Below are positions 36,331 through 63,859 of a DNA stretch of 64,000 bases, one piece after another. The position numbers and the translations under genes were made by a program. Below the pieces are notes generated by a model. It saw only the letters and a program-made list of their open reading frames with translations, was not told where the DNA came from and searched no databases. Within the stretch, counting starts at the first letter, position 1; each line of letters starts with the position of its first letter. The DNA comes from Malacoraja senta (Eukaryota), in contig JAXLNO010001705.1 in NCBI GenBank assembly GCA_038087875.1, forward strand, positions 248,001-312,000. Reading direction: 5' to 3'.

Positions 36331-36680
36331 TAACCCATACGCCAACTTTAGTTATAGCCACTGAAGATTGAGCGTTCCTGAGAAACCCTGGGAATTTTAC
36401 AGTAATTAATACTGGAGGCCAATCGATATATTTCCAACTCGAGATTGTGCGTACATTTGACAGTAACTGCCAGATATTGGCACCCCAAAAAGTTTTCAGC
36501 CAATGTGTTCCAAGGTGGGATCAAGGCGGAATGTTGAACTAATAGCTTATGATAGTTAGGTGAAGTTTCATGAAATAGAATATTGCGCAACGAGTTGCTG
36601 AATAATGATTCGTCGCACTGAATATTTTGCAAAACGAGCAAGAGAGAGAGTTTAACATTCATGTGACCTTTGACTTGCAG

Positions 36681-36968: not shown

Positions 36969-37005
36969 GTTCGTGTTGGGGTGCACCGATGCCGAGGGTG
37001 GAGTT

Positions 37006-38432: not shown

Positions 38433-38750
38433 ATCGCGTGGTACATCACCCAACCATCACCATTACCATAACTGCCCTTGATGAAATCAAGCGCAGCAAA
38501 AAAGCGATCGCCGTGTGTTTGGTCAACGATTTCACCCCAGTGAAATTTACTGTGAACTGGCTGACGATTGGAAAGCGATTGGATTCTGGCATCGTCACCT
38601 CTCCCGCCTTCCAGGTGAACGGTAACGGTAACTTCTTGGCGACCAGCCAGTTGACATTCCCAGCTGGAGAGTGGATCGGTGGTCCCGTCTATACCTGCCA
38701 AGTCAACCATGAAAAATATATTAAAAGCCAAAATATCAGTAGGTCGCCAG
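38433..38750 (+). CDS. IGHM: IgM CH2 exon, open and intact
   Basis: TTTCTTTCAG| acceptor and G|GTAAGA donor. DRVVHHPTITITITALDEIKRSKKAIAVCLVNDFTPVKFTVNWL...TSPAFQVNGNGNFLATSQLTFPAGEWIGGPVYTCQVNHEKYIKSQNISRSP carries the C1-set Cys-Trp-Cys and shark Cmu2 motifs. Confidence 0.93.
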
Positions 38751-38829
38751 GTAAGAAATACATCCGGGTATTAGTGTAAACATTAGCGCTCAAGGTGGTA
38801 GAACTTCACTGACATTGTGAAAGCCCATA

Positions 38830-40808: not shown

Positions 40809-41512
40809 TGTGATGAAATTAATGATGGTCTGCGAGATAATGGCCTGGTCTGTGGAGCCATGGTCCAGGTTTAAGTAGGAGGTGTCCAAGTGTTGGGATC
40901 TGGCCTCAGCCGGTAGAGGGCAGCACGCCAGACGACCAAGGCACCTCCCTTGTCGACGGGTTTGATGCTAATGTCAGAGTGCTGCAGTGTGAGTAAGGCG
41001 ACTGGAACGGTTAGAACGGCCGATGTCACGTTAACATTTAGAAATGGAAATGTTCAGGAGGGTAGAAGGCCATCCGGTAAAGTCCAAGAGGAGGAAGCCG
41101 GTGCAGAATGTATAAGTGGGTCATCAGTGGCAAGGAGGCGGAGATCCTTGTTTTTTTATTTGTACCTATTAATACCTCTACCCCCCCCCCCCCACTCTCA
41201 GTCTAAAGGAGGGTCTCGACCCGAAACGTCACATATTCATTTTCTGCAGAGATGGTGCCTGACCCGCTGAGTTACTCCAGCATTGCGTATCTATCGTGGT
41301 ATAGCCCATGGTGCGATCTCTCATTTAATTCGTTGTGTTGTCTGCACAGAGACAAAAGTCAGTTCAAGACGATTTAGGGTCATAGTTCCTAGAATCACTA
41401 CTCAGAAGCGATCATGTACACATTAAAGTTTTGGGGGCGGATGATTGGTGTAAACCTTGGATCCCGGTTACTCCTGGAAATGCTTATGTTGACATTAATT
41501 ATTGTGCCACAG

Positions 41513-41817
41513 ATGAGATAGTTCCTGCTACGCAACAAAGATTACAATCCTTCCACCGCCTGTTGAACAAGAGTTAATGGAGATGACCGTGACGTTAACT
41601 TGTCTGGTGTCCAATGCACTTTACGGTATCACAGTATCTTGGAACCGCATAAAGGTGCCTTTGGCATCAGAGATGCAGTCGACAGAACATGGGGATATCG
41701 TAGAGAGCAAATTAAACATTTCGACTCATCACGGGCTGAGTGGGGATTATTTCGAATGCGTGGTGAGCCATGATGATATGCCGACTCCAAAAACTGAACG
41801 AATCAACTGGAAGAAAG
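41513..41817 (+). CDS. IGHM: IgM CH3 exon; in frame only from the GAG acceptor at 41517, otherwise frameshifted
   Basis: DSSCYATKITILPPPVEQELMEMTVTLTCLVSNALYGITVSW...FECVVSHDDMPTPKTERINWKK, donor G|GTGAGC at 41817/41818. The CAG acceptor at 41512 gives TAA at 41575-41577. Confidence 0.85.
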
Positions 41818-42946
41818 GTGAGCCGGGGTAGCTGCAGAGTGGTTCTGTGGGTCAGAGGTGACTGGTGCACTTTACTTCTGAGATAAAGCTAAAATTAATG
41901 ATTGAGATCACTCCGTCGGAGAAGAAATATCTATGCAAAATGAAATAGTGCTAAGACTTTACTGAGTCCTTGGTCAGAGCTGGAAAAGAGAGAATACGAG
42001 ATGACTTTGCGATGAATATGAGGTGCGGACGGGTTATTGGAAACATCGATGATAATTTGCAGCGAGTGTCAACGTGCGGATACGTTGTCTCTGGTCCACA
42101 TGTTACAATATGGGTATTTAGAGCAATGCGGCGTTTTTTTTTTAAAGCGCACGGTGTTGTAACTTGCAGAGATATGGGGTTGTCTACCAAATTAACCATG
42201 TGGTGATGGTGGGAGTAAATCGCAGATACTCTCACTTGCAGCAGAAATGCCCGTTTCTGAACTAGGCACATGAAACGAGTTACTTTAAATTAAAAACAAA
42301 TACACTTCAGATGCCGTATGTCGGAAAGACGTCACCTTAATGTAGATCATTAATATTGACTCCAATGGTTTACATCTACACAGACGGTGGGAGGAATGTG
42401 ATTCTGAACGCTTGCCATAGGGCTTAGGTACAACGCCGAGGAAGGCCGCAGACAAAGAGCCTAGGAGTGTTTTGTTTTCCATTTTGCATGTATTGTCCAG
42501 CTCAAAATGCCCATTTCGAAATTCCCTTTCCCCTCTCAACTCCCCCGAACATCATCTCTGTAACTTAGGAACGAGTCATTTTTCCCACTTGTCATAGAAA
42601 AGCATCTCATACTGTCCCTGCGTACACACTGTCTAACGTGCTCATTCTTTCCTGCGATCCCTGAATTTAGTTTGGGACCCGTCATTGTCATCGTTTTCGA
42701 AAATACACTTCTAAAAGCACCACTTTGTATGCTAAACATTCACCGCTGGCATCCCCTGACCACTCCGACGATGGTTTGATAAAGTCTCATTCATTTGCTC
42801 TTGGGAATTGAATGAGACAGATGAACCAAGGTAGATCTGCAGTTAGCAATAAATGACAAAAGGAGCAGGAGACAACCATGGTCATCAGATATAACACGGA
42901 TCAGAGAGGGCGAATGACTTGATCTTGTGTTGTGGTGTTTCAAGTT

Positions 42947-45148
42947 ATTCATAGAAAAAATAGGTACAGGAGGAGGCCATTTGGCCCTTCGAGCCAGCAC
43001 CGCCATTCATTGTGATCATGGCTGATCGTCCCCCAATCAATAAACCGTGCCTGCCTTGTCCCCATATCCCTTGATTCCACTACACCTAATAGCTCTATCT
43101 AATTCTCTCTTAAATCTATCCAGTGATTTGGCCTCCACTGCCCTCTGTGGCAGGGAATTTCACAACTCTCTGGGTGAAAACGTTTTTTCTCAGCTCAAAC
43201 TTAAATGGCCTCCCCTTTATTCTAAGACTGTGGCCCCCTGGTTCTGGACTCGCCCAGCATTGGGAATTTTTTTCCTGCATCTAGCTTGTCCAGTCCTTTT
43301 ATAATTGTATATGTTTCTATAAGATTCCCCCTCATCCTTCTAAACTCCAGTGAATACAAGCCTAGTCTTTTCAATCTTTCCTCATATGGCTGTCCCGCCA
43401 TCCCAGGGATCAATCTCGTGAACCTACTCTGCACTGCCTCAATCACAAGGATGTCTTCCTCAAATTAGGAGACCAAAAATGTACACAATACGCCAGATGT
43501 AGTCTTACCAGAGCCCGATACACCTGCAGAAGAACCTCTTTACTCCTATATTAAAATCCTCTTGTTATGAAGGCCAATTAGCTTTCTTCACTGCCTGCTG
43601 TTCCTGCACGCCAAATTTCAGTGACTGGTGTACAAGGACACCCAGGTCTCTCTGTACCTCCCCCTAACCTAACCCCATTGAGATAATAATCTGCCCTGCT
43701 TGTTTTTGCCGCCAAAGTGGATAACCCCACTTTTAGCTACATTATACTGCATTGGCCACGCACCTGCCCACTCATTCAACCTGTCCAGATAGCCCTGCAA
43801 CCTCCTAACATCCTCTTCACAGTTCACACTGCCACCCAACTTTGTGTCATCCACAAACTTGCTGGTGTTGCTCCTAATTCCCTCTTTCAAATCATTAATA
43901 TATATGGTAAACAGTTGTGGCCCCAACACCGAGCCTTGCGGCACTCCACTCACCATTGTCTGCCATTCTGAATAGGACCGGTTCACTCCTACTCTTTGCT
44001 TCCTGTCTGCCAACCAATTTTCTATCCACGTCAACACCCTACCCCCAATACCACGTGCCCTAATTTTAGTCATCCGTCTCCCGTGCGGTACCTTATCAAA
44101 GGCTTTCTGAAAGTCCAGATACACTACATCCACTGACACCCCTTCATCCATTTTACTTGTCACATTCTCAAAACATTCCAGAAGATTAGTCAGGCATGAT
44201 TTTCCTTTCATAAATCCATGCTTCCTTGGACTAATCTTTTTACTGCTATCCAAATGCCCCATTATTACATCTTTAATAATTGATTCCAGCATCTTTCCCA
44301 CCACCGAAGTCAGGCTAACTGGTCTGTCCCCGTTTTCTCTCTCGCTCCTTTCTTGAAACGTGGGATAACATTAGCTATCCTGCAATCCACAGGAACTGAT
44401 CCTGACTATTGAACATTGGAAAATCATCACCAATTCGTCCATTATTTCTAGAGCCGCCTCCCTGAGGTCCCTGGGATTCAGGCCCAGGGGATTTATCATC
44501 CTTCAGTGCCATTAGCCTACCCAATACTATTTCTCGCCTAATGATAATTTCTTTCAGTTCCTCTACCCCCGTAGATCCCCGGGCCTCCAGTACTTCTGGG
44601 AGATTGTTTGTGTCTTCCTCAGTGGAGACAAATCAACTATTGTTCAACTCATCTGCCATTTCCTTGTTCCCCATAATAATTTCACCCATGTCTGCCTTCA
44701 ACGGACCCACATTTGACTTTGCTATTCATTTTCCCTTAAAATATCTAAAGAAGCTTTTACGTTTCTTCTTTACATTCCTTGCCAGCTTCCCCTCGTACTT
44801 CATCTTTTCAGCCCTTATTGCCCGTTTGGTTTCCTTCTGTTGTCCTATGAAAGTTTCCCAATCATCTGGCTTCCGGCTACTCTTTGCTGTGTTATACATC
44901 TTTTCTTTTAGTTTTATTCTATCTCTAACTTATCTTGTCATCCACAGTTGCCTCCTACTCCCCTAAGAATCTTTCTTCCTTTTTGGAATGAAGTGATCCT
45001 GTGTCTTCCGGATTATGCCCAGAAATTCCTGCCATTGCTGTTCCACCGTCATTCCTGCTAGGATCCCTTTCCAGTCCACCTTGACCAGCTCCTCCCTCAT
45101 GCCTTCATAGTCCCCTTTGTTCAACTGCATCACTGACACTTCCGATTT
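42947..45148 (-). mobile_element. CR1 LINE, 5'-truncated ORF2 plus 3' UTR
   Basis: KHGFMKGKSCLTNLLECFE, VDVVYLDFQKAFDKVPH, GVPQGSVLGPQLFTIYINDL and SKFVDDTKLGG. CR1 3' end near 42950. Confidence 0.93.
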
Positions 45149-45337
45149 CATACAAATCTACTGCCGTCCACAGGAGAGACGCACATTCAGGTGTATTTGT
45201 CTGAACAAAGAGACAAGTCACAAAAGGGGAATGCAAAACCGTAATACTGTCTGTTGGCAGTTTACTCACGTACGAATATTAGCTTTTAATCGCTTTAACC
45301 GTCTTGTATAATAAACGCCATTTGAATTGTTCCCTAG

Positions 45338-45729
45338 GTCAACATCTGCTGACACCGTCCGTCTCAGTCCTTCTGCCGCCGACAGAAGAAATCTCCGCGC
45401 ACAAGACTATCACCCTGACCTGCTTTGTGAGAGGATTCTCCCCTCGCAGGGTCTTCGTCACGTGGACAGTTGATGACAAGCGGGTGCATTGGAGCAAGTA
45501 CCGGAACACCGAGGTGGTGGCGGAGAACGGCAATGACACCTTCTTCACGTACAGCCTGTTATCCGTTGGGGCAGAGCAGTGGGCTAGCGGAGCCTCCTTC
45601 TCCTGTCTGGTGGGGCACGAAGCAATCCCCATGAAGACCATCGTCAGAACGGTCAATAAGTCCAGCGGTAAACCCAGTTTTGTCAACGTTTCCCTTGTAT
45701 TCATGGACACGGTCAATTCCTGTCAATGA
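45338..45729 (+). CDS. IGHM: IgM CH4 exon with secretory tailpiece, intact
   Basis: TCCCTAG| acceptor. [15 protein letters not shown]...[17 protein letters not shown]...[49 protein letters not shown]-stop, with the NVS sequon and penultimate Cys. Confidence 0.95.
45667..45673 (+). other. Internal CH4 splice donor (G|GTAAAC) at the position used for membrane-form IgM
   Basis: TCC AGC G|GT AAA at the SSGK motif, the conserved CH4-to-TM splice position in IgM genes. Confidence 0.75.
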
Positions 45730-47117: not shown

Positions 47118-47311
47118 NNNNNNNNNNNNNNNNNNNNNNNNNNNNNNNNNNNNNNNNNNNNNNNNNNNNNNNNNNNNNNNNNNNNNNNNNNNNNNNNNNN
47201 NNNNNNNNNNNNNNNNNNNNNNNNNNNNNNNNNNNNNNNNNNNNNNNNNNNNNNNNNNNNNNNNNNNNNNNNNNNNNNNNNNNNNNNNNNNNNNNNNNNN
47301 NNNNNNNNNNN
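47118..47311. other. Assembly gap (194 N)
   Basis: Run of N seen directly. Confidence 1.
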
Positions 47312-47759
47312 AGTATGTCGGGTTTTAAGCAAACTTACTTATTCATACAAAGTTACAGGCAAACGGAAGGGCAATTCAGGTCATTTAACCAGTAGTTTTC
47401 CACGCGTTCCAAAAGACTAAGTGTAACCGTAGATTAAACATCTCCCATTCTTCAGTGACAGTGCCAGCTGCCACAACAGCAACACTCGTGATTCGTGAGG
47501 GCTGGGGACGAAGCACATTATCTATGCTTGCGTCAGGAAACACGAGTTGAAAAGTATTCTGTCCATTTATTTTTTTCTCCACATAAAATTTAGTAATCTC
47601 TAATTTTTATTTTGTATCCCAGATCTTTTGTTCATAATTTGCGAATACTCTGAGGGCAAAATTCTGTTTCCCAATCTGCTACAAAACGAGGGTCATCTGT
47701 ATGTGGTTCTACTAAGTCCTGGCTGACCCCTACTGTCCATAGGGGCCAGACTCCCTCCT

Positions 47760-48830
47760 ACGTACATCCTTTGTTCCTTGCCCATCCAATAATAACTTGT
47801 CTCCAAGTGTTCTCCAGCTGACAAGCTCTCAACTCATTTCCCTGAACCAGTTCTAGCAGTAGCCCACATTAATCATGGAAGTTCTCTTGAATGACATCTC
47901 AGGAGGTTCTCCACATCTTTGCCTTTCACTCTTGTATTACTCCAACCAATATTGGGCAATTGAAATTCCAACATTACCACTCCTCATTTCTGTGATCCTT
48001 GCAGTGGGAAGATGAAATAGACCCAGTGATGAGATAGTATCCTTTATTCCAGCCCAATCGAGTTTGTGCATGGCCTGACTTAGAGTAGTTGGCATCCGTC
48101 CATTGGTGCGAGGCATTGGTGCAGCTTTGATGCTGTCCTGTTAGGAGAGGGGAATGTTTAATCGATAGTCTATAATACCATTTTCCTCTGCCCCCATCTC
48201 CTGTTTTCCATCCTTGCCTTTTCTGTCTCCTTGAATATCAAGAGGTCAGTTCTGCTGAGAATGAGCCATGTTATCAACACCACATCATAATCTAACGTGG
48301 TTCTTTGTAGCTGCAGCTCGCCAATCTTACTCACCACATTCTGTGTATATTGTGGACACCAGATTGTGTCTCTCAATTTGCTCCTATCCAACAATTCCTT
48401 CTCTGTCATCATCCAACACTCACACCCTCTGTTCACCTTATTTATTTTTGCTGTTACTGCCTGCTATGCCCATACCCTGCTGATCTTGATTGAATCATCC
48501 TGACCTGGGCATTGTCCCAATCCCATTAACTTGTAACCTATCCATCTCATACAGGTTTCATCTGCCTCAAAACTGGTTCTACTACCCCCAGAATCGTATG
48601 TACCATGGATGTAACCACTCTATCGCCACCTTCTCTTCACATTCTGTTCTCCCTGAAGCCTGTCCCTGCCAGCAGCCCAGGGATTGCCATCTGTCTACCT
48701 CTGGCAACATTGACATACCTCCATTGCTGCCTTCTCCACATTGGTATCCATGTGTGCCACTTGCTTTGGGTCCCACTTCCCTTTGCACCCTCTCACTCAT
48801 ATCATGTGAAGCAGAGATCATGTCTTGAGA
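47760..48830 (-). mobile_element. Old CR1 5' region remnant (ORF1 end and ORF2 endonuclease start)
   Basis: Decayed VVSKIGELQ...DYDVVLITWL, resembling the APE N-terminus, and EWLHPWYIRFW, resembling ORF1. Confidence 0.5.
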
Positions 48831-49038
48831 GAAGCAACCAATCCCACAGTCACTTTGACCCATCCACCTGTCGCTTGTCCTCCTCCTTTGTTCACTCACC
48901 CCTCTGTCATTTTGCCAAACCCTCCCATTGCCTGCCCACCCTCTGCCTGTCAATGACCCCAAATGATCTATCCTTTTTTCTTGACCTTGTGTTGATCCAA
49001 TATGTTTCAGTGATGGGTTATCTTTCTTCTCTTTCCAG

Positions 49039-49097
49039 GTGAATTGCTGGACAGCCCCTGGATGTAAATATCCATACTGGACCATCCATGGCTGGTG
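49039..49097 (+). CDS. RNASET2-like: RNase T2-family exon carrying CAS I (VNCWTAPGCKYPYWTIHGW-W)
   Basis: TCTTTCTTCTCTTTCCAG| acceptor and TG|GTAACT donor; 59 nt, phase 0 to 2. YWTIHG matches the RNase T2 CAS I motif YWTIHGLWP. Confidence 0.85.
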
Positions 49098-49640
49098 GTA
49101 ACTGTCTCTTTATTCAGATGGGCTTTGGTGAGAGATGGGAGTTGTCAGGGAGAGCTGACGGGGCTCCAGTGGTAGTGTCGGGCTATGGCGCTGGGCTGTG
49201 GTCTCCACTGAGCCCGGGCACCAGCGCCAGAACAACATCTGGTTCTGCAGCTGGACAGCTGCATCCTGAGCAAAGGTCCTCAGCTTCACCTCAAATCTCC
49301 GCCCCTGAATCTGAAACCATGTCCCCACTTCTGTATTCCCTCATCAAGGGAAACATCCTCTCAGCATAACCCTGTCAGTCCGCCTCACAATTTAGTCTAT
49401 TCAAGAAGATCACCTCTCATTCTAAAATCTCCAGTGAGCCTCGGCCCAACCTGCTCAATCTCTCATACAGCACCCCATCCCAGGAAGCATCCTTTTACCA
49501 TTCACCCAACTGCTTCCATGGCAGCTATGCCTCTCTTTAAATAAAGGGAGCAAGACTCTGTCGCGATGTCACTAAAGGCCTGCAGAGACAAAGCAAGACC
49601 TCAGTCGGAATAATATACACAAGACGTGAGTGACAATTAA

Positions 49641-50520
49641 TCAAGTCAAGTCAAGTCACATTTATTTATATAGCACATTTGAAAAACAACTCTCGTTGAC
49701 CAAAGTGTTTTACATTTGTTATAAGAATAGTATACACAAGCAAACTACATACATATATACAAATAGCCCTCACTCAGAGGACGTCAGGAAAGGCTTGGGA
49801 GAACAGATACGTTTTTAGTCTAGACTTAAAGGAGTCGATGGAGGGGGCAGTTCTGATGGGAAGGGGGATGCTGTTCCACAGTCTAGTTGCTGCAACCGCA
49901 AAGGCGCGATCGCCCCTGAGCTTATGCCTAGACCGCGGGACATTCAGCAACCCCAAGTCAGCCGATCTGAGTGACCTGGAGGTGGTGTAGTGGGTGAGAA
50001 GTCTTTTAATGTAAGTGGGTGCAAGCCCATTGAGGGCTTTGTAGACAAAGAGGAGGGTCTTGAAATTTATTCTGAACCGCACAGGGAGCCAGTGGAGAGA
50101 GGCCAGGATCGGGATGATGTGGTCCCTTTTTCGGGTGCCCGTTAGGAGTCTCGCTGCGGCGTTTTGGACCAGTTGCAGGCGGGACAGGGAAGATTGGCTG
50201 ATGCCAGTGTAAAGGGAGTTGCAGTAATCTAGGCGGGAGGAGATAAATGTATGGATGATCTTTTCGAGGTCATCAAACTGGAGGAATTGTTTTATTTTAG
50301 CTATCATCCGAAGCTGAAATAAGCTAGCTTTTACCACGGCATTGACTTGTTTGTCAAATTTCAGTGCTGAGTCAAATACCACGCCAAGGTTTTTGACGTG
50401 AGGTTTGAGTAGTGGGGTAAGGCTTCCAAGGCTGCCTGCTATCATTTTGATTGAGTCCGAGGGGCCGAGAAGGAATGACCTCAGACTTAATCTCGTTTAG
50501 TTCTTTGTTCATAATAACTT
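49641..50520 (-). mobile_element. L2 LINE 3' end with (TGACT)n tail
   Basis: ORF VKNLGVVFDSAL...SRLDYCNSLYTGI...LQLVQNAAARLL...LHWLPVRFRINFK...RGDRAFAVAATRLWNSIP. The tail appears as TCAAGTCAAGTCAAGTCA at 49641-49658 on the + strand. Confidence 0.92.
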
Positions 50521-50985
50521 GTCAAGCCAGAGACTGTTCTGCAGACTCAAAGCATGCAGCCTTTTAATATCATATTTAATAGCAAGAAATGTGGAGTGGG
50601 TCACGTATATTTGTTAAAACGGTTAACTATTGTGATCCAGTATTTTCCTCTTTCCCTTATCAACCTTATCATTAAAGATCAAGACGTGCAAGGTCAGTGT
50701 GACCAGACATGTTCAACCTATGTTCACTGAAATAAAGTTCAATTTCCACGGTACAAATTGCTCATAAGATGGGAGAACATGTTCAGTTCTTCCCACAATT
50801 CCCACACCTCCCCACTACCATACCCCAAACCCAGGGTATAGTTTGTATCATTCTACTGATTCTACAAGACTGGAGTCTGGCACTGAGACAGAACAGGAAG
50901 TGTTGTCCCTGTGAAGAAGTTGTCGGCAAAGTGCAGGAACACTTCAGCTTGGAGGCAGCAACTCACCCAACCTTTTTTCTTTCAG

Positions 50986-51040
50986 GCACCCCCAGGGTGG
51001 CACGGGGAATACGGATAAGTATGACTACAATAAAATAAAG
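50986..51040 (+). CDS. RNASET2-like: RNase T2-family exon ((W)HPQGGTGNTDKYDYNKIK)
   Basis: CCTTTTTTCTTTCAG| acceptor and AAG|GTCAGT donor; 55 nt, phase 2 to 0. Links the flanking exons in frame and ends in IK like the human exon ending EEIK. Confidence 0.78.
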
Positions 51041-51399
51041 GTCAGTAAGTACTTACGGTTCAAGACAATGGTGGGTTTTGGGTCTGGGGTGACACGCTGC
51101 TACACAGGCCTTTGGTCAATATATCAAGAGGGTGGGTGGGCTTTTCAAATCACACAGCAGCAGGAGGTGTCCAAAGGTCTGTTCTCTGGGCATTTTACAT
51201 CGGTCTCAGCTATCTGAGATTGTGTGCATAAACACACAAACCCATTGAAACCCTTCAGTTTGTGACCCACTCCCAGTATCTGTTATTCTACATGTAAATC
51301 ACCCCCAATCCCTGAATGACTCCCAATCTGTAACTCTGGTATCTGTTATTTCCATATAAAAGCTATCTGAACCCCTGCCTTAGATCAAAGCCTGTTACT

Positions 51400-51625
51400 C
51401 TCTCACAGATATCTGTTATTAGAATCATGCAGCATGGAAAGAAACCTGTCAGCTTATCCATGCCGATCAAAATGTCTACCAAAGCTAGTACATTTTGCCC
51501 GTTTGGCCCATATCCCTCTAAACCCTTCCTATGCATAAACCTGTACACATGTCTTTTAAACGTTACAATTCTACCCACCTCTACCAATTTCTCGGGCAGC
51601 TTCTTTATCCCCAGCACCTTGGATG
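51400..51625 (-). mobile_element. CR1 3' fragment
   Basis: KLPEKLVEVGRIVTFKRHVYRFMHRKGLEGYGPN, a typical CR1 ORF2 C-terminus. Confidence 0.7.
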
Positions 51626-51630
51626 TGAAT

Positions 51631-54600
51631 AAATAGTAAGATTAAATGAGAACTTTGAAGTTTGATCTTTATTTTATGAGGAGTTACGATGAGCGATTAC
51701 GTGAAGAAGGCCGTCAGCCCGCATGCGCGTCAATCTTCAAAGCTGCGGTGTGAAATCACAGATAACAGTAGTTGACCTGAACATAGTAAGATTGGAAAGA
51801 ACTAGAACTACCAGATGACCTTCATAATATGAGGGTTGGGAGCGGTGGGCACGTAATCGCTCATCGTAACTCCTCATAAAATAAAGATCAAACTTCAAAC
51901 TGGTAAGTTCTCATTTGATCTTACTATTTTACTTCGGAGTCACGTGAGTGACTTACGTGAAGACTTCAAAGCTCTGTGATTTCATGCCAGATACGAGTCC
52001 AAACGTCACACACTGCATCAATTGACCATGGATGAGTGAAAAAGATTAATGCATTCAGACATGACATAGTTTGTTAAAAATGCTGATGCTTTAATCATCA
52101 AAGGAAAATAATAGTGACCCCTCCCATCCTGGGGGGAAACTGTGAAACAGAACATAAATGGAATTTGGCAAACACCCCCGGTCTGGCAATGGGTTAATAT
52201 AAAATGTTGGAAAGTTCGTTTCTTTGACCATCCTGCAGCCGCTAGGATGTGGTGTAGTGGAACGTACATAACCCTTGCTGCTGCTGTTGTAGCAGCCCGA
52301 GTGGAGTGAGATTTGAAAATATTAGTTTCTACTCCTTCATAAGCCAAAACCCGTCTTGACCACCTGGAGATGGTCTGGATTGATACCTTTTATGAGGTTT
52401 TTAGTAACTAACAATCATTGCTAGTGCAGAGCCTCTAAGGCTCTTGGTGACCTTGACGTATTGGTGTAAATGTATGACCACACACAACCAAAGGTCCATG
52501 GGGTATGCCATGAGAAATTGTTTGGGACCTGATGCCTCTGGTCTGCTCTGCTTAACTACATCATAAACATAAAATATTATTCATTAGCAGATGTAACCAT
52601 CCTGTCCAGTCGCCATTAAAGTAGTGGCTGGACCCGTTGCGCTGAGACCAGCGCCATGAGCATAACCACTTTGTAAGTGAGTTTGGCCAGGGATAGAGAT
52701 GTAGCTGGGCCCCACTGGCGAAGCAGTTTTAGCACAATGCTAACATCCCATATCTCCGAGTACCTGGACCTGGGAGAATTTGCGTTAAAGATATCCTTTA
52801 TAAATCTGGATATCAGAGGGTGAGACCCGACAGAGTGGGTCCCGATTGCTGCAGAAAATATGATGAGAAGGCACGTTGGCACAGTTAATGGTACTAAAAC
52901 TTAATTAATTGTCAAAGACCCATCTGAAAAATGAACTCCGAGACGTTAGTTATCCGTGCCGTATTATATGTAACATTGGCATTTAAACAAAACAGTTCCC
53001 ATCTCCTGATGAGGTAAATGTACTGCTTTTTCGGTGCTATCCCTGCACTCTGCAGTGAGCACGTACACAGATTGGTCTGGCAACCCGAGCCGCCGGAACG
53101 GTCTTCGCAGAGTCTGCAAGTTCATAAATTGATTTTATCCTGCAGAGGATGGTTTCCCAAGTCACGGGCTTAACCAGCAAATGTTTTGTGTTTAGGATAA
53201 CCATATAAGGTCCTATTATCATTCCCAACGTTAGCAGGGACCATGGCTGCATAGGCCAGTCAGGCAGTACCAAATGCCTGAAGCGAGATCTTGCTGGATT
53301 TTGTGCAAGACCCGACTAATGAGACAAAATGGAGAAAAGACAAAAAGAACATTCCTGCGCAGTGTAGCGAGAATACATCTATTGCCACTGTGCCACATAT
53401 TTTACAATTGATGATTGAGCCTGGATGTAAACATATTGATATTCGGTGTTCCATCGAACCACAATGTCATTAAATACTTTGTGATACAACATCCATTCTG
53501 TGTTGTCATAGATTTTACGTGATGATACACCAGTGCCAAATGAGGTTAGGTAAATTATCACAGGATATTTAATTTAACTGCACCCATGATTAACATATGC
53601 CACCACCATAGTGTATCAACTTGGAGTTGAGCATGCAGATTAGGCATATTCGCACAATAAACTTTTAACCCAAATAATACACCTAGTGTCTATAGGTAGT
53701 TGATACCATAACTGAAGAATTGGTAACTCATGCAAGTCCCATCCGCCTCCGTAACTAGAGATGGTATTCGTAATTTTTCATCTTTGAGCACTAGCATCAG
53801 TTTATAAAATAACTGAAGAGTTACTGAGCAAAAGTTACAGGAGCAATGTTGAATACAGTTCTTCCACCATTCTGACTTTGATAGCTTCAGCTGGTAAAGG
53901 CATAGGTCTGTTAATAATGCCCAAAATGGCACTTAAGAGGTTACTCCTTTGCATGTTTCTGATAATGCAAAGGTCCAAAAGCACAGCTGAAACACAGCCA
54001 CTATATTGCCAATTACACTTGATGAATAGAGGCTGCTTCATAACAACAAAGTTGATACAGGCTTTTATGAATTCCAATCTCTTGCCCCAGGGCAGACTCA
54101 CAGCCAAATTAATAGAGTTAAAGGTAAATCAGAATAATCAATAACTCTAGTTGGTATCAACTTAAATTTAACTGGATGGCTGAGAAACCCCAATTTCTCA
54201 AATATAATGTGCGGCTGAATCAGTTAATTTTAGCAAAATACAGCGTTTAGAATATCATGCAGTTAGGCCATAACAATTGTGTTTGAGCACTGAGCAGCCC
54301 AAGCACCGGTTTTTAATAATTTGATAAATAGCCTGGGACTGAAGTTAGCATATTTTGCAACGCTTTAACTGTTATCATTGCCCCATCCAGCTAAATCTCA
54401 AATATCTCCGGTGATCCCTGTGAAAGAGAACTGAATAGTATCTTTGAGATCAATGCATGCCATAAAGATCCTATGGAAATCAGTTATTAGAGGGTAACGA
54501 AGTTTGCTATGCTGAAATGTCTATACTGCACATGCGAGTTAATCAAGGATGAACCGACATCCTGCACCTTACACAATGATCAGGCCACGCCTGCCATAGT

Positions 54601-56036
54601 TCTGAGCCTGCCTTGAAAAAACACTCTGGTCATATTGCTGAGCCTGTGTCGAAAGGAAATCCTGGCCATAATACTGAGTCTGCCTTGGAAGACAACTCTG
54701 GCCATAATTCTGTGCCTGCCCATATTTCCGAGCCTGTCTCAAAAGGCAATCCTGGCCATAATACTGAGCCTGCTTCGAAAGACAATTCTGGCCACAATTC
54801 CAAGCCTGTGCAGTATAAACTAATCACATGTTCACATTGTCATTTGTACAAAAAATAAGTGTAAATATTACCACCTTGTAAATGGTCCACATACCCCATG
54901 TTTCGGAAAGAACCAGACCCACCTACCTTCATGGTTACCGGTGGTCTTATGGTAAGCCCAAAGTCCCCTGATGCGGGTTCTATTTCCGTCCTTGATTGGA
55001 GAGTAGGGCTGGTAGGGTACGTGGATTCCATATTTTTCCTGAGACCGGCTTGGGCCTTGGCCTGAAAGACGTCTGCCCAGCTTGCACGCTGCCACCAGCT
55101 TCAGTGAACCGTTTACTGCCGATGGAGGCGTGGGGTGTGTTGTCGCCAAAACGATGAAGCTGTACTCGTCGAACCTTGATTAGTTCCACAGCTGTTGCTT
55201 CCTCATGCAGGTCTTACCTGTTGGATAGGCTTACCTGAAGAGAAGATTCGGCGGCTGGTTTCATTTCCTGGGTTTTCATGCCCCTCCAATGTCACCCCTG
55301 ATAGCGCTGTTCACTGCCGGCACTGTCAGGAACCAACTCTTCCTGCAGCGCTCCTTCGTTTGCGAGGATGTCGCAACCCTGGATGCCACGACAGACATTT
55401 CTTGTACCTCACATATATACTCCAGTATGTTCCACGGACATACTTCCGAGTTTGGAGTCAGTTACACACTGACCCCTCGCACTCCTCTCCATTGCGAGGG
55501 CGATAGTAAGCAGCCCTGAAACAGGTGCTGCTGCAGGCCCCCGAGGAGACCTGCGCTGATAAGGCCCCTCCACAGACCATATCCTTCGTACCTCGTGGTA
55601 TGCTCCCCGGCTATACCTCCGAACTCCGAGTCAGACAAAACTGACCCCGAATGCTCTCCTCCTCAGAGACGGAGACACTGTGCAGCCCTGTAACAGGTGC
55701 TGCTGCCGCGGCCCCCCCGAGGAGACCCGCGGTGATATAACTCCCTCCATTGGAGAATACCATTGTGGAGCACCTCTCCATCAGGTGCTCCATGTTGGTT
55801 TAGACGTCCGAAGACGCTACCCATTGAAGGAGGGGATCCTCTCCATTAAGAATCCTCCTGCCCGACTCGTTTGAGTCAACGGGCCGTACAGACTTTCTCT
55901 GTGGCTACCCTTCCAAGCGGGGTTGCCAAGGTGCTACTGGCACCAGTCTGAAGCCGCTGGCTCCACCGCCAGCGACTCGGAAGGCGAATTTGACCGCCTT
56001 CTTCACGTAGTCACTCACGTGACTCTGAAGTAAAAT
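51631..56036 (-). mobile_element. DIRS1-type tyrosine-recombinase retrotransposon, full terminal architecture, decayed ORFs
   Basis: YR motifs FKSHSTRAATT...ILAAAGWS..TF and HPLISRF..IFN..P..RY...WDV..VL. ITR cores at 51698-51716 and 55991-56009 (18/19 match). The ICR at 51850-51962 is complementary to both termini and joins them at TTT. Confidence 0.88.
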
Positions 56037-56459
56037 CTTTCCCCTCTCACGTTAAAGCTGTGCCCTCTAGTTTTAGACTCCCCTATCTTGGATCACAGGT
56101 ATAGGCTGTGATCATGCATCTTATCTAAGCTTTCCATGATTTCATAAACCTCCATAAGATCATCTCTTGGCCTCCTTCACTCCAGGGAAAACTGTCCCAG
56201 TCTATTCAGCCTGATCAATCTGAAGAAGGTTCCCAACCCCAAAGGTCTTCTGTCCATTCCCTCTGCCTGACTCCATCTTACTCCAGCACAGTTTTTGCTA
56301 AAGGTTCCAGCGCCTGCAGTTTCTTGTGTCCCCAGCCGATCCAATGTCACCTAACAACTCAAGCCTTCCAATCTTGTAGTATTTCACTTGTGAATATTAG
56401 GTTTAGCGGGACAGGCAGCATCTCTGGAGAGAAGGAATGGGTGACGTTTCGGGTCAATA

Positions 56460-57245
56460 GACAATAGACTATAGGTGCAGGAGTAGGCCATTCGGCCCTT
56501 CGAGCCAGCACCACCATTCAATGTGATCATGGCTGATCATCCACAATCACTTTGGATCAATCAAAAGGAAACACTTTTTCTCACATAGAGTGGTGTCAGT
56601 GGAATTCTCTGCCTCAGAGGGCGATGGAGGCAGGTTCGCTGGATACTTTCAAGAGTGAGCTAGATAGGGCTCTTAAATAGCGGAGTCAGGGAATATGGGG
56701 AGAAGGCAGGAACGGGGTACTGATTGGGGATGATCAGCCATGATCACTTTGAATGGCGGTGCTGGCTCGAAGGGCCAAATGGCCTACTCCTGCACCTATT
56801 GTCTATTGTCTATTGTCTAATCAGTTCCCCGTTCCTGCCTTCTCTCCATATACCTTAACTCCACTATCCATAAGAGCTCTATCTAACTCTCTCTTGAAAG
56901 CATCCAGAGAGCCAGCCTCCACCGCCATCTGAGGCAGAGAATTCCACACACTCACAACTCTCTGTGGGAAAAGTTGTTTTTCATCTCCGTTCTAAATGGC
57001 TTACCACATATTCTTAAACTATGGCCCCTGGTTCTGGACTCCCCCAACATTGAGAACATGTTTTCTGCCTCTATCGTGTCCAAACCCTTAATAATCTTAT
57101 ATGTTTCAATGAGATTTCCTCTCATCCTTCTAAATTCCAGAGCATACAAGTCCAGCCGCCCCATTCTATCAACATAAGACAGTCCCGCCATCCCTGGAAT
57201 TAACCTGGTGAACCTACGCTGCACTCCCTCAATAGCAAGAATGTC
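56460..57245. mobile_element. CR1 3' fragment (-) with a second CR1 3' end (+, about 56550-56818) nested inside it
   Basis: The minus copy breaks at CACAATCA and resumes at AATCAGTTCCCC. The insert ends in the (ATTGTCT)3 tail. Confidence 0.75.
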
Positions 57246-58151
57246 CTTAACATTGGAGGATTCAATGTTCATACTATTGGGTTGTAAGCTTTGTAAATGT
57301 ATTAAAAAAATTATCTCTAGTGTGTGTAGGATAGTGTTAATCTGTGGGGATCACTGGTCGGCACGGACTCGGTGGGACAAAGGGCCTGTTTCCATGCTGT
57401 ATCTCTTAACTAAATTAAACAAAATGGAGTACAATAAATTAATCTGAATGTTAATCTGAATCCTATGTTTAAAAAGCTTGGAGACAAATGATTAAATAGG
57501 CTTGGCAGAGAGGGATATTCTTAATGTGGGCAAATGGGATTAGTGTAGTTGAGTAAATTGCATGAACCCAGTTTGCCAAAGAGCTCATTTCTGTGATCAT
57601 AGAGATATAGAGTAGTGCTGCACAGAAACTTTTCCTTCAGGGAACCTTGTCTATGCTGACCATGATCCTCATCCGCACGACCCCATTTGACCACATTGGG
57701 ATCTCATCTCTCTACTCCTTTCCTACCCATGTACCTGGACACCCCTACCCTGGAGAAAGGACTCCAACTATCTATGCTGTCTATGCCCCTCATGATCTTA
57801 TTATCCTTTATCACCCTTCTTTCAGGCAACATCCTGGTGAATCTTTTTTGTCCAATTATAAATATACGACAATATTCAAGTGTGGAAATAACGTTTGTGT
57901 TTCTGTTACTTTATGTGGAAATCCTCACTTGGATTCCAGCCTGTAATTCCCGAGTATCTGTTGTTGTAAACCCCCAAATCCCTGGATTAGATCCCACCCT
58001 GTTCCCAGATACCTGTATCTGTTTTCATATCGCTGACCAACTTGCAATCAGCTGCTATCTCTGTGTAGGGTTTGTGATGTTCTATTTCTTATATTTTCAG
58101 TTTTTATTTCACTCTTGCCCTGACACAAACTGTTTATTTGTTTATTTTCAG

Positions 58152-58210
58152 GATTTAGAGAAAGATTTGAAGACCGATTGGCCAGATCTGTCTAACAGGA
58201 ACACTCTTTG
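58152..58210 (+). CDS. RNASET2-like: RNase T2-family exon (DLEKDLKTDWPDLSNRNTL-W)
   Basis: TTTATTTTCAG| acceptor and TG|GTAATG donor; 59 nt, phase 0 to 2. Matches the DL..(E/D)..YWPD...FW segment of RNase T2. Confidence 0.85.
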
Positions 58211-58379
58211 GTAATGGTTTGTGCTGATGGTGAATAAATCCCCAGGGGCTGACCAAATATATACTTGCACCTTGTGAAAAGCTAGAGTAGAAATTATGGA
58301 GCCCCTTGCACAGATATTACCAGAATAGGTAGGAGGAGCCATCTTGAGGAACGGCTGCAAAACAGCAGCCGTCCGTTAA

Positions 58380-59352
58380 TTGTACTTTTTTACCAAGTTT
58401 TTAGTTTTCTTTAAGTCTTTGTTTTTTATTTATTTTGCCTTTTGATGTGGGGGGAACAAGGGGAAATCACTTCCCGGTACCTACCTGGTCGGTGAGGCAG
58501 CCTTCTCTCCGGCTGCCCAGTCGACCCGTCCTCGCGGCCTACCAGCGGGCGTGGAGCGGCGTGGAGCGGCGTTTCCCGACGGGGGCCGCACAGCACCCTC
58601 AGCTTCGGTGGCGGCACGGCGCTGGAGCGCTACTGTGCAGCGGAGCGGGCGATGCCTTGCCTGGGACCGACGCGCTGGAGCTCCGGTGAGCTGGACCGTC
58701 GAGCTCAACACCTCCGGGCTGCGGGACTGTGGAGCGGGCGGCGGCGCCGACTCCAACACCGGGAGCCTTGAGCTCCAAATCGGCACGGCCTTGTCGGCTT
58801 CAGGTGCTGCGGACGCCTGCGGGAAATCGGCCGTTCCAGCCGTAGTTGCGGCCTCCGGTGAGGAATGCGGCCGTTCAGGTGGCCCAGCTGCTGGAGGACT
58901 CTCCCGACGCCGGGGCTACATCACCCGGTGAGAACGGCCAGGATCATCCGGCCTCCGTAGAGGCAATAGCGGGGGCTTCATTTGGCCTGACTGTTTGGGT
59001 GAACTGGGGCTGGGGACTGGACATTGTGCCTTCCCCCACAGTGGAAATCATTGTGGGGGGATGATTTTTGTATGTAATTGTTTGTAATTGTATTTGTTGG
59101 TCTGTGTTCAAGATGGAGGTCGGAGGGGAGAGTGGACGCTGGCGCGGTTTCGTTGCCGCTGCTCTCTCCTCAAATTGTGCTTCTGATTTTCTTTTTTGTG
59201 TTTTTGGAAGGAATTCTGTCCCTGATTTGTGTATTGGTCTTTATAACTTATTTTTTAAAATTCTGATTATATGTTTTCTATAAATCTCTGTAAGGTGTCC
59301 TTGAGACCTCGGTATAAGGCGCCCATAAATAAAATTCATTATTATTATTATT
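58380..59352 (+). mobile_element. GC-rich non-autonomous retroelement with an L2-type 3' end and (ATT)n tail
   Basis: Ends TGTAAGGTGTCCTTGAG...AGGCGCCCATAAATAAAATTCATTATTATTATTA. The body is CpG-rich with no recognisable protein. Confidence 0.5.
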
Positions 59353-61169
59353 AGATTCTTTAGGCACAGGTGAAGTTCTGGGTGGCTAATGTTGTACTGT
59401 TATTTAAGGGCACCAAGGACAAGCCAGGGACACTGGCGAGTGAGCCTGCATCAGTAGTGGGTACGTTACTGTAGGTGATTCTGAGAGACTGCATTTACCA
59501 ACAGTTGATAGATTAAGACTGATGAGGGATAATCATGGGAAATCATATCTCACAAATCAGACAGAGTTTTTTAAAGAGGTGACCAAGAGGATTGATTGAG
59601 GTCAAAGATCGTTGTCTATGTGGACATTTGTTAGGCCATGACAAGTTCATAAGTGATAGGAGCAAAATTAGGCCATTCAGTCATTCCACAATAGTGACCC
59701 AGCATCGATCCCTGTGGCACACCACTGGTCACAGATCTCCAATCTGAAAAGCAAGTCTTACACCCTCTTGCTCTTGCCATCAAATCAATTTTCTCACCAA
59801 TTGGCTAGTTTGCCCTGGATCTCATGTGATCTAACCTTCCAGATAACTTGCAAAGCGATACCTTGTCAAAGGCCTTGCTGAAATCCACAGGCCACACTGC
59901 CCTCATCAATCCTCTTCATCACCTCTTCAAAAAACTATCGTTCATGAGGCACGATTTCCCACACATTGCCATGCTAATCAATCCTTGCATGTCTAAATGC
60001 AGCTATACCATGTCTCTTGTGTCATCTCCAATATCTATCATACCATTGATCTTAAACTCACCAGTCTGCAGTTCCCTTCTGTCATCGGGCCACCTACATT
60101 GTCCTCGGACTAATTTGAAACATACTACAGCACAGGAATAGGCTCCGGTTTGAAGAAGGGTCTCGACCCGAAACCTCTCCCATTCCTACTCTCCAGAGAT
60201 GCTGCCTGTCCTGCTGAGTTACTCCAGCATTTTGTGTCTATCTATGCGAATAGGCTCAACAGCCCACCATGTCTGTGCGAACCATATTTTCAATTTAAAC
60301 CAATCCCATCTGCCTGCACAAGATCCATGTCCCTCCATTCCCTGCCTGGTCACATGTCTGTCTAAATACCTCTTAAATGTATTGTATCTACTTCCACGGA
60401 AGGCACAAAATGCTGGAGTAACTCAGCTGGACAGGCAGCATCTATGAAGAGAAGGAATAGGTGACGGTTCTGGGTGGAGACCATTCTTCACCATCTACCT
60501 CCACCATCTCCAGGCCACATGTTCCCTACTATTCTGTGTAATAAAACTTCCCTCATAAATCTATTTTACGCTCTCCCATCTGACCTTAAAGCTATACTGC
60601 CTAATATATGACATTTCCATCCTGGCTATCTACCCTATCTAATTCTCTGATAATTTTATTAAAAGTTCCTACCATGATCCTTAAGGTACAAACTAGTTCC
60701 CAACATCCTGTCTGAAACGCAGTCCTTGACCATTACACTGTGCTTCTTCCACTGCATCGGGCAATGTGTTTCAGATTCCAAATACTCTCTGTTGAAAATG
60801 TTATTTGTCAGATCTCCAAATCATTTACCGCTTCTCCTAAATCTGTGCCATCTAGTTTCCTCCTGTCCACTGCCTCTTACTCTCATAACTTTGTGTAAAT
60901 CCATCAGGCCCCCTTCAGCCTCCTCAATTCACGCGAAAACTCTAACGCTGTCTGTCCAGTCGCTCCTCATAACTCAGATGCTCAATCCTAGATCAGAATT
61001 ATACAGGACTCCAGGAGTGGCCTGACCAATATTTAAAGTTGTAACACCGTTCTTATTGAGTGCCTGACAAATGAAGGCAAATATTGTGCACACCTGTGCT
61101 GGCAACCTTGTGTACTGCACACCTGCAATCCTTGGTTTTAAACACCAAAGTTTGGCTGTTCAATGGTTG

Positions 61170-61450
61170 AGGGTGGCACAGTGGCACAACTAGTAGAGCT
61201 AATACCACACGGCTCCAGCAACCCCTGGTTCAATCCTGGTATCTGCTGCTGTCTGTGTTTGTACATTCTCCCCGTTATTCTGTGGGCTTCCTCAGGGTGC
61301 TCTGGATTCTTCCCACATCCAAAAGATGTGTGAGGGCCACATTAATTGGCTGCTGTAAATTGAGGGGGAGAATCTATGGGGCAATTGATCATAAAATGGG
61401 TGCTTGGTAGTCAGTGCAGACTCAGGAAGCCAAATAACTGACTGTCCTGT
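61170..61450 (+). mobile_element. Degenerate V-SINE (HE1-like)
   Basis: GGCACAGTGGCACA...GGTTCAATCCTG (A/B-box-like) followed by the ATTCTCCCCG...GGTGCTCTGGATTCTTCCCACATCC core. Confidence 0.6.
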
Positions 61451-61494
61451 GTTGTATCTTCATACTGTATGAGTCAAATCTCCAACCCACTGGA

Positions 61495-61695
61495 TCCCCT
61501 CCCACAGACACTCTCCCCACCATTCTCCACCCCTTCAACAGACCCTCCCCCCCATCACCCACTCTCCCCCACGCTTTCAACGGACACCCTCCCCTCTCCC
61601 ACGAACACTCTCCCCCATCACCCACTCTCCCCACCCCTCCCCTCCCACAGCCACTCTCCCCCATCACCCACCCTCCCCACTCACTACTCCCCTGC
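61495..61695. repeat. C-rich low-complexity tandem repeat (ACTCTCCCCC/ACCCTCCCC units)
   Basis: Seen directly. Confidence 0.8.
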
Positions 61696-61794
61696 CTCAG
61701 CCCGTTGCACCCAGTGCCAGGCAGGTAGGGCCGTCATGTGCACACCACATGCACACCCTGTCCTTGTGTACACACTGTGTTGTATACACCACAT

Positions 61795-62200
61795 ACATAG
61801 ATACATAGATACATGGAAATTAGGTGCAGGAGTAGGCCATTCGGCCCTTCGAGCCTGCACCGCCATTCAATATGATCATGGCTGATCATCCAACTCAGTA
61901 TCCCGTACCTGCCTTCTCTCCATACCCCCTGATCCCTTTAGCCACAAGGGCCACATCTAACTCCCTCTTAAATATAGCCAATGAACTGGCCTCAACTACC
62001 CTCTGTGGCAGAGAGTTCCAGAGATTCACCACTCTCTGTGTGAAAAGGTTTTTCCTCATCTCGGTCTTAAAGGATTTCCCCCTTATCCTTAAGCTGTGAC
62101 CCCTTGTCCTGGACTTCCCCAACATCTGGAACAATCTTCCTGCATCTAGCCTGTCCAACCCCATAAGAATTTTGTACGTTTCTATAAGATCCCCTCAATC
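61795..62200 (-). mobile_element. CR1 3' end
   Basis: GLDRLDAGRLFQMLGKSRTRGHSLRIRGKSFKTEMRKNLFTQRVVNLWNSLPQ plus 3' UTR. Confidence 0.88.
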
Positions 62201-62634
62201 TCCGAAGGACATGCCGAAGGACACCCAATATCAGGAATGTTTCATCCTGCATGATGGGTCTCCTACTTTTCCTTGAGGCAGCTTCCCTATTCCCTACTCG
62301 CCAGCCTCCGTTGTCCCACTTGTGTCACTTAGGGGAGAAGTCCAAATGTCGTTTAAATCTATCTCTACATGACCTCTGTCAGCTTGTTCCATAAATGTAG
62401 CACCCTCTGCTCCCCATCTCTCTCAGGAAGCCTTTCCTGCTTTTCTGAGCAATGTCCATTGCCCTGAGCCCTTCCTCTGCTTCACCATGTGATGTTAATC
62501 CATTCGTATTGGATGTCCTGCTGATGTAGTTCCTGAAACCACATACGCCATTCAGCCCATTAAACCTGTCCTAGCCCCATAGTTGAGTGGGTTCAATCAA
62601 TCCCTAGTTTCTGCACGTCAGTTCCAGATTGCTG

Positions 62635-62900
62635 GCTGCACAGTGGCACAGCGGGTAGAATCACTGTCTTGGAGATCCAGTGACCCAGGTTCGATCCTGA
62701 TCTCGGGTACTGTCTGTCTGGAGTTTGCACATTCCCTGTGGCTGATGGATTTCACCCAGGTGATCCAGTTTCCTCCCAATTTCTAAAGTCACCTTGATGG
62801 TGCCATTGAGTTGTGTAAGCATCGCTGCAGTAATAGAAGAATGAGATTGTAGAGGTTGCGCTGAGAACTAGTATAGACTGAATAGGCCCAATGGCCATCT
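62635..62900 (+). mobile_element. Degenerate V-SINE (HE1-like)
   Basis: GCACAGTGGCACAGCGGGTAGA...GGTTCGATCCTG...GGAGTTTGCACATTCCC. Confidence 0.65.
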
Positions 62901-63772
62901 ATTCAGAAATTTATAGAGACTGGTAGAGTTATACAGTACAGAGACAGGCCTTTCAACCCACTTAGCCCATGTTGCCAAAGTGCCAAACTAAGCCAGTCCC
63001 ATTTGCCCATATTTGATCCATATCTAGAACTTAGAGTCAAAAGAGACTTCAGTGCTTGACTAAAAATCACTGCTGGATAAACTCAGCGTGCCAGATAGCT
63101 TCTGTGGAGGGAAATGGACAAATAATGTTTCGGTTCCTGATCTTTCTTCAGACTGGAGAAGGGTCCTGATCCGAAAAGTCATCTGTCTACTTTCCCCATT
63201 CAGATACTGTCTGGTCTGCTGAGTTCCTCCACCAACTTGTTTTTAACTTCCTCTAAACATTTTCTATCCTAATGCCTGTCCAAATGTCGTTTAAATCTAT
63301 CTCTACATGACCTCTGTCAGCTTGTTCCATAAATGTAGCACCCTCTGTGTGGAAAAAGTTGCCCCTTAGGTCCCCTTTAAATCTTGCCCTCTCACCTTAA
63401 ACCTATGCCCTCAAGTTTTAGATAACTGGGAAAACAGTGACTTTATTTCCTTCTTCGCTCCAGTGAAAACAGTCCCAGCCTATCCAGTCTCTCCATATCA
63501 TTCAAACCCTCCCAGTTACATCCTCATGAATCTCTTCTGTACACATTCCAACTTAATTACAGCGTTCCTATAGTTGAAATTGTTCCTATATATTTAGTTG
63601 GAATTATTCTTATAGTTGGGTTACTAGAGCTGTGCACAAGAGTCCAAGTGTGGTCTCACCAACAATGTCTTTGAAAGAGAATTTCTGTTTCTCCTTCAAT
63701 TCATCTTTCAGCTCTGCAACTCTTGAGAACTCTGCATATTGAAACATTGCTGATCCTAATCTCTTTCCACAG

Positions 63773-63859
63773 GGCCCATGAGTGGGATACACACGGTCAG
63801 CCTGCTGCTCAGAAATTAACAGTGCATGAGTACTTCAAGAAAGGTCTGGACTACTACAG
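63773..63859 (+). CDS. RNASET2-like: RNase T2-family exon carrying CAS II ((W)AHEWDTHGQPAAQKLTVHEYFKKGLDYY-R)
   Basis: CTCTTTCCACAG| acceptor and AG|GTGAGG donor; 87 nt with only one open frame. WxHEWxxHG matches the CAS II motif FWxHEWxKHGTC, and YF..GLDYY matches YF..SLELY. Confidence 0.87.

Follow-up and report, generated by a model that had tools for sequence, protein, structure and literature searches.

We analyzed a stretch of 64,000 nt from the genome of Malacoraja senta (assembly GCA_038087875.1, contig JAXLNO010001705.1, positions 248,001 to 312,000 of the forward strand), referred to below as the window, and found in its right-hand part four short exons of a gene related to RNase T2. 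The exons lie on the plus strand, downstream of a run of N letters and of the remains of an immunoglobulin M (IgM) gene cluster (Table 1). Animals usually have one RNase T2 enzyme, which evolves slowly and has housekeeping and immune functions; it is lysosomal and makes ligands of the Toll-like receptors TLR7/8. In contrast to the single, conserved vertebrate gene RNASET2, the skate and ray family to which the window gene appears to belong is multi-copy and fast-diverging.

A partial RNase T2-like gene in the window

Each of the four exons has a polypyrimidine tract with AG on its 5' side and GT on its 3' side, and spliced together they give 260 nt, or 86 codons, free of stops. The coordinates, splice sites and open frame proposed in an initial annotation of the window were all exact, and the CAS I and CAS II motifs named there are recognizable in the exons. 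Exon 3 encodes CAS I as ...YWTIHGWW, containing the first catalytic His, with tblastn E values down to 1e-8 (P0004 and P0001). In exon 4 the Cys of canonical RNase T2 is not present. With annotated skate homologs as tblastn queries, all four exons were found, in order, at E values of 1e-13 to 1e-2.

Searched on its own, exon 6 matched the Pfam family PF00445 with a score of 17 bits, which falls short of the gathering score of 26 (E=0.0067), and, in the PDB, tomato RNase LE at E=0.0047, while single-exon Pfam and PDB searches with exons 3, 4 and 5, which are too short, gave no match. The spliced 86-amino-acid product scored 47.4 bits (E ~2e-12 at Z=20000) against a hidden Markov model (HMM) built from 15 bird RNASET2 proteins only, compared with a top score of 11.8 bits among 1000 shuffled controls. 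The full-length paralogs described below match PF00445 at 41.5-83 bits, and the assignment to the RNase T2 family made in the initial annotation holds. The phases (0, 2, 0, 2) and positions of the introns are, residue for residue, those of coding exons 3-6 of canonical RNASET2; they had earlier been likened to the human gene, and the comparison here was made with that of pigeon. We regard the observation of four RNase T2-like exons as confirmed, real and well past chance, and consider it quite probable that they correspond to coding exons 3-6 in a single copy from a short RNase T2-like family specific to skates and rays.

Table 1 Positions of the features found in the window, with exons numbered as in the family gene.
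Feature	Position	Strand	Remarks
Coding exon 3	49039-49097	+	59 nt; phase 0 at its start; last 2 nt belong to a Trp codon; CAS I
Coding exon 4	50986-51040	+	55 nt; variable loop; ends in phase 0 after ...NKIK
Coding exon 5	58152-58210	+	59 nt; conserved WPDL motif; ends in a split Trp codon; tblastn E=4e-5
Coding exon 6	63773-63859	+	87 nt; CAS II = HEWDTHGQP; tblastn E=4.5e-13
Intron 2, 3' part	47429-49038	+	77-91% identical to intron 2 of skate paralogs
Interspersed repeats, introns 3 and 4	49520-50519, 51320-52119		Read coverage
N run	47118-47311		194 N; assembly gap or deliberate mask
IgM constant region	36758-45729	+	Four C1-set exons, interrupted by reverse-transcriptase open reading frames
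Cmu1 exon	36758-36868	+	In-frame stop
IgM C-domain exon 2	38393-38776	+	
IgM C-domain exon 3	41541-41825	+	
Cmu4 exon	45304-45729	+	Secretory tail
Reverse-transcriptase open reading frames	31930-32415, 43669-44304		Inside the IgM pseudo-cluster region
Satellite	662-25003, 27248-31352		TTGAC-based, 20-nt unit TTGAAATGGATTGACTTGAC

A short, multi-copy family in skates and rays

In a phmmer search of 1.84 billion representative proteins, a query of 30 amino acids around exon 6 had seven matches, four of which are proteins of 91-168 amino acids that are 68-82% identical over exon 6. Word-indexed protein searches started from these matches led to a closed set of proteins, listed by NCBI as “ribonuclease T2-like”, “T2-A-like” or “uncharacterized protein”. 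The set comprises three proteins in Leucoraja erinacea (little skate), eight in Rhinoraja longicauda and one in Pristis pectinata (sawfish), with further family proteins in Mobula, Hypanus and Hemitrygon; the nearest relatives of the window gene are RefSeq proteins of 154-190 amino acids in skates, sawfish and manta. Three large protein searches returned only this family, bird RNASET2 and a few metagenomic T2 proteins, and a search of the Protein Atlas for the family yielded generic plant T2 clusters only. All family proteins match PF00445 (E 2e-10 to 4e-23). The 86-amino-acid product of the window is 56-70% identical to them, and the DNA surrounding the window exons, also that of the introns, shows 86-91% identity to the loci of L. 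erinacea and R. longicauda. The window copy is thus an ordinary member of a pipeline-annotated, lineage-specific family of paralogs. It had been described as hidden, a term that does not fit a gene whose close relatives are annotated by NCBI as “ribonuclease T2-like” in L. erinacea, R. longicauda, P. pectinata, Mobula and others. A literature search that paired RNase T2 with sharks, skates, stingrays or immunoglobulins found no paper on the family; the one relevant study was that of Hillwig et al. (2009, PMC2720953).

Exact mapping of the annotated proteins onto their own loci gave a family gene of 10 coding exons (53, 67, 59, 55, 59, 87, 34, 45, 33 and 30 nt), with introns in phases 2, 0, 2, 0, 2, 2, 0, 0 and 0. 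Complete members have ~170 amino acids, with exon 1 encoding the signal peptide, and a mature protein of ~150 amino acids. RNASET2 of pigeon has nine exons (89, 67, 56, 58, 71, 114, 46, 75 and 189 nt; phases 2, 0, 2, 0, 2, 2, 0 and 0). The full-length members of the family share with vertebrate RNASET2 the signal peptide and the residues and phases of the first eight introns, with exon boundaries at ...VCK, ...HG.W, ...IK and ...W. They differ from it in length (~170 and not ~255 amino acids), in the shortening of exons 6-9 and in a last exon that is split in two. Exons 7-10 of the window copy would be expected 1-13 kb past the end of the window.

The shared intron positions and phases are an ancestral feature and no proof of orthology. 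Their identity, together with human RNase T2 (3T0O, 8e-15) being the top PDB sequence match of the family, is what could speak for the window gene as the syntenic RNASET2 ortholog of M. senta. We rejected this candidate and give it practically no chance of being correct, as the family has at least 3 annotated copies in L. erinacea and at least 9 in R. longicauda and its proteins are far shorter (154-190 amino acids among the annotated relatives), with an identity to bird RNASET2 of 25-40%, depending on the alignment. In the tree, moreover, the family is monophyletic with respect to bird RNASET2 (100/100 support) on a long branch, with skate copies in species-specific clades and the window copy among them. 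The divergent, lineage-specific paralog postulated in the initial annotation is what these data describe.

Its origin within the fishes is another matter. The family could have expanded from within the fish-specific RNase Dre1 (rnaset2l) clade, and would hence be a skate and ray branch of a paralog that is already described. RNase Ler1, known from a little-skate expressed sequence tag (CV222118), was placed in the Dre1 clade (Hillwig et al. 2009, PMC2720953). However, Ler1 has Asn at the position of His104 in CAS II, where the window copy and most family members have His. The Dre1 clade is, in addition, described with proteins of ordinary length and one gene per clade per genome, and short multi-copy forms were not reported (Hillwig et al. 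2009, PMC2720953). On this comparison, made at the His104 position and by description only, we lean against a Dre1 origin while giving it appreciable weight, at roughly one-third of our belief.

Several gene models in the family have peculiarities of their own. Extra unannotated T2-like copies lie inverted beside or inside annotated genes, at L006:8016-8099 and L010:30809-42299 (both on the minus strand), and the 77-kb gene model of P0014 probably spans more than one copy. Two longer proteins, P0017 (Mobula birostris, 320 amino acids) and P0018 (Hypanus sabinus, 310 amino acids), contain a repeat insert of ~130 amino acids, rich in Arg, Ser and Lys, that follows the T2 core and precedes the last beta-strand. 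One of the two carries the NCBI name “serine/arginine-rich splicing factor 6-like”, and such a strongly basic tail is unusual for a secreted RNase-like protein. Finally, an alternative last exon ending in ...AQLMVLCCKVFV(F/L) is common to P0001 (L001:47599-47680, L. erinacea) and the end of P0011 (R. longicauda); it represents an alternative 3' end that has been conserved, or else an artifact of annotation that recurs in both models.

Divergence between paralogs is concentrated in exons

Comparison of recently duplicated copies revealed that the exons of the mature protein are 5-11 times more divergent than the introns, for which divergence was taken from the 250-nt flanks of the exons. In L. 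erinacea, the tandem pair L002 and L005, 20 kb apart on chromosome CM054009.1, differs by 18.1% in exons and 3.4% in flanking introns (Fisher p=2e-25). The corresponding values are 22.6% and 2.0% for L003 and L004 of R. longicauda (p=2e-59), and 21.8% and 11.7% for the window copy and L002 (p=2e-5). Over the whole gene, DNA divergence between paralogs is 2.5-3.4%, and the 53-nt signal-peptide exon shows 0-1 differences. In the mature region, the proportion of nonsynonymous differences (pN) is 0.205-0.24 and that of synonymous differences (pS) 0.16-0.17, giving a pN/pS of 1.26-1.39; at codons with identical amino acids there are 0.13-0.17 synonymous differences per site. For the four window exons against other copies, the ratio of nonsynonymous to synonymous substitution rates (dN/dS) is 1.3-1.55.

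Neutral pseudogene decay cannot put exon divergence above intron divergence, and invariant Trp, Cys and His residues persist, from which we infer that the exons are kept diverse. The pattern fits rapid adaptive change of the mature protein, in the manner of toxin or defense genes. It also fits old exon diversity that is kept by selection while gene conversion homogenizes the introns, as has been argued for the introns of genes of the major histocompatibility complex (MHC). That intron homogenization explains the data as well as fast adaptive change does weighs against reading them as hypervariability gained by rapid evolution. So do the modest excess of pN/pS over 1, with synonymous sites raised as well, and the status of L003 and L004 as unplaced contigs that could be haplotypes of one locus. 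Exon-restricted hyperdivergence is nonetheless the part of the family result that is worth following. It was unexpected and concerns the family as a whole.

Exon 6 of the window is closest to that of L001 (6 differences in 87 nt), whereas its flanking introns are closest to L002. This mosaic similarity suggests exchange between paralogs.

Predicted fold and activity

We modeled the full-length paralog P0009 with AlphaFold (pLDDT 88.5, pTM 0.80) and compared the model with the PDB by Foldseek. T2 RNases account for all of the top 19 matches, with E <= 0.001 for 15 of these, and the TM scores are 0.66-0.69 to RNase MC1 and 0.63 to human RNase T2. The alpha+beta T2 fold is thus predicted for this paralog, the model being one of P0009 and not of the window fragment. 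Vertebrate RNASET2 (human 3T0O and the pigeon gene) and the family have in common this fold, CAS I as ...WTIHG.W and the His-Glu...His of CAS II.

Within these motifs the family has its own signature. CAS I reads WTIHGWW in place of the canonical (F/Y)TIHGLW, with Leu changed to Trp throughout skates and rays. The disulfide that joins the loop after CAS I to CAS II in RNASET2 is lost across the family, both Cys being replaced in alignments to human 3T0O and bird RNASET2, with a lone Cys in P0012 as the exception. CAS II has the form H-E-W-x-[K/R/E/T/A]-H-G-K-P, so that its Lys, fixed in the canonical His-Glu-x-x-Lys-His-Gly-Thr-Cys, is variable. In the window copy the His, Glu and second His are kept and Lys, Thr and Cys are replaced by Thr, Gln and Pro; the Thr for Lys is also found in several paralogs. 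The window copy retains 23 of the 25 family-invariant residues of exons 3-6. The two departures are His for the Pro after WW, and Gln for the Lys after His-Gly, both found in the window copy only; the Gln is due to a C at 63798 that no other copy has.

The family proteins would act as T2-type acid endoribonucleases that are secreted. The likeliest mode of action would be general acid-base cleavage by the two His residues via a 2',3'-cyclic phosphate. The mature protein is predicted to keep the RNase T2 fold, has a shortened C-terminal third and often lacks the CAS II Lys, and its surface would be under diversification, as in defense or recognition proteins. Both catalytic His are present in every copy except P0005. 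Speaking against ribonuclease activity are the Thr at the CAS II Lys and the Gln at the invariant Lys of the window copy and the changes in P0005 and P0011 of R. longicauda, which have QQW for the HEW of CAS II, P0005 also having Tyr for the second catalytic His. These two are probably not enzymes, and the family may act without catalysis.

Expression

Expression was assessed in five RNA runs, each sampled at 5-25%, and absence of reads is accordingly weak evidence. In these samples no reads fell on exons 3, 4 or 5 of the window copy, and the joint of exon 5 to exon 6 (58210 to 63773) was not listed in the read layouts. Position 63798 was covered by 11 reads, 10 in run X15 and one in run X18, all of which have A, the base of every paralog; the C of the window copy was therefore found in 0 of 11. 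Those samples thus show low expression of the family and none detectable of the window copy. Co-regulation in B cells, as had been suggested, is not borne out, as transcripts of the window copy were not seen.

Within 47320-53300, RNA and DNA reads of other runs cover the repeats in introns 3 and 4 only (Table 1). Two further intronic repeats (59990-60586 and 61781-62377) have hundreds- to thousands-fold coverage of either strand in each of the four RNA runs labeled with the same species. Strand-switch joints are numerous there, and the repeats are interspersed elements with high expression and not parts of the gene.

The junction with the IgM cluster

The TTGAC satellite occupies the first 31 kb of the window and gives rise to many spurious minus-strand open reading frames. 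Some of these frames recur every 2,756 nt, which suggests a higher-order repeat. Directly after the satellite lies a germline-joined variable-diversity-joining (VDJ) remnant with a J-like end (...YLDYWGGGTMLTVTNG), whose V segment is cut off by the satellite DNA. Together with the constant region it forms an IgM unit (31340-45729) that is a pseudo-cluster. Membrane exons of IgM were sought by motif and hydrophobicity between the Cmu4 exon and exon 3 of the T2-like gene, and none were found.

From the other side, homology to intron 2 of the paralogs starts at 47429, which is 118 nt past the right end of the N run, in comparison with every skate locus, and the DNA left of the N run has no match to the skate T2-like loci. 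Exons 1 and 2 and their well-conserved intron flanks were sought in the window by tblastn and DNA comparison and were not found, and a search for an in-frame upstream start of the window copy was likewise negative. In the paralogs, exon 2 lies 3-13 kb upstream of exon 3 and exon 1 another 4.5-18 kb upstream. With the T2-like gene lacking exons 1 and 2 and the IgM unit lacking visible membrane exons, both units are cut at the N run, and the boundary between them is inside the N run or adjoins it. The cut fits a contig join that hides DNA or, if the N run is a short mask, a real rearrangement.

We therefore asked how the family is placed elsewhere. Within 10 kb of 10 other family loci (L001-L008, L010 and L011; ~600 kb), no Ig C-domain was found, and these loci have tandem or inverted T2-like copies in place of Ig. 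The initial annotation had the gene directly adjacent to an IgM cluster and possibly co-duplicated with Ig heavy-chain (IgH) clusters or co-regulated in B cells. In favor of this, exon 3 lies on the same strand as the Cmu4 exon, 3.3 kb downstream of it, and several skate copies of the family are on small unplaced contigs, as Ig clusters often are. Yet the other loci form T2-like arrays, the units meet at an N run where both are incomplete, the IgM unit is damaged by a stop in Cmu1 and by satellite DNA that cuts off its V segment, and transcripts of the window copy were not seen. Taken together, co-duplication or co-regulation beside a true IgM neighbor is very unlikely. The position downstream of a decayed IgM cluster is probably incidental or an effect of the N run, and not a conserved linkage. 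Caution is thus advised with the eye-catching adjacency to Ig, which depends on a run of N letters and on an Ig cluster in decay and does not recur at the 10 other loci.

Integrity of the window copy

As assembled, the window copy starts inside intron 2, just past the N run, without the signal-peptide exon and exon 2. The missing 5' exons, the two unique changes at invariant residues, the lack of reads of its own and the decayed neighborhood count for a dead copy, and the chance that it is recently truncated and silent is about even. This reading has against it that all four exons are open and spliceable, for which P is ~0.05 under neutral decay at half the intron divergence between the window and L002. 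The same figure favors a complete and working gene whose exons 1 and 2 and promoter are in sequence missing at the N run, with IgM not the immediate neighbor. The cut of both units exactly at the N run is as expected from a join of two contigs, and most of the family-invariant residues are kept. However, the N run has only 194 letters compared with the 3-13 kb spanned by the rest of intron 2 and the 4.5-18 kb of intron 1 in paralogs; two invariant residues carry unique changes; and the base of the window copy at 63798 is missing from the reads that cover it. We put a complete gene at somewhat below an even chance.

Comparison with other systems and implications

Secreted families with accelerated evolution include snake venom phospholipases A2 (PLA2) and conotoxins. 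In both, as in the skate family, divergence is higher in the mature-protein exons than in the introns, with a conserved signal-peptide exon and with synonymous sites raised too. They differ from it in protein fold, and the skate family shows no sign of being a venom component. A second likeness is to the S-RNases of plant self-incompatibility, which have the T2 fold and coding diversity that is kept high, and two of which (1iqq and 1ioo) are among the structural matches of the P0009 model. S-RNase diversity, however, exists among the alleles of one locus and is used to reject pollen, whereas the diversity in skates is between tandem paralogs of an animal.

We tentatively propose that skates and rays have a hypervariable family of small secreted T2-type ribonucleases, in which the mature exons are diverse and the introns and signal-peptide exon are homogenized. 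Its members would act in defense or in the recognition of self or partner, as an animal counterpart of S-RNases or in an evolution like that of toxins. They could possibly stand in for RNase A, a superfamily that, as discussed by Hillwig et al. (2009, PMC2720953), came later in the chordate lineage, and copies may lie in repeat-rich IgH regions. As a whole we consider this proposal rather less likely than not.

If true, the T2 scaffold would serve in animals as a diversifying defense or recognition molecule, as it does in the S-RNases of plants; we know of no other animal case. The family would also be a clean natural system in which to follow how exon diversity persists while introns homogenize.

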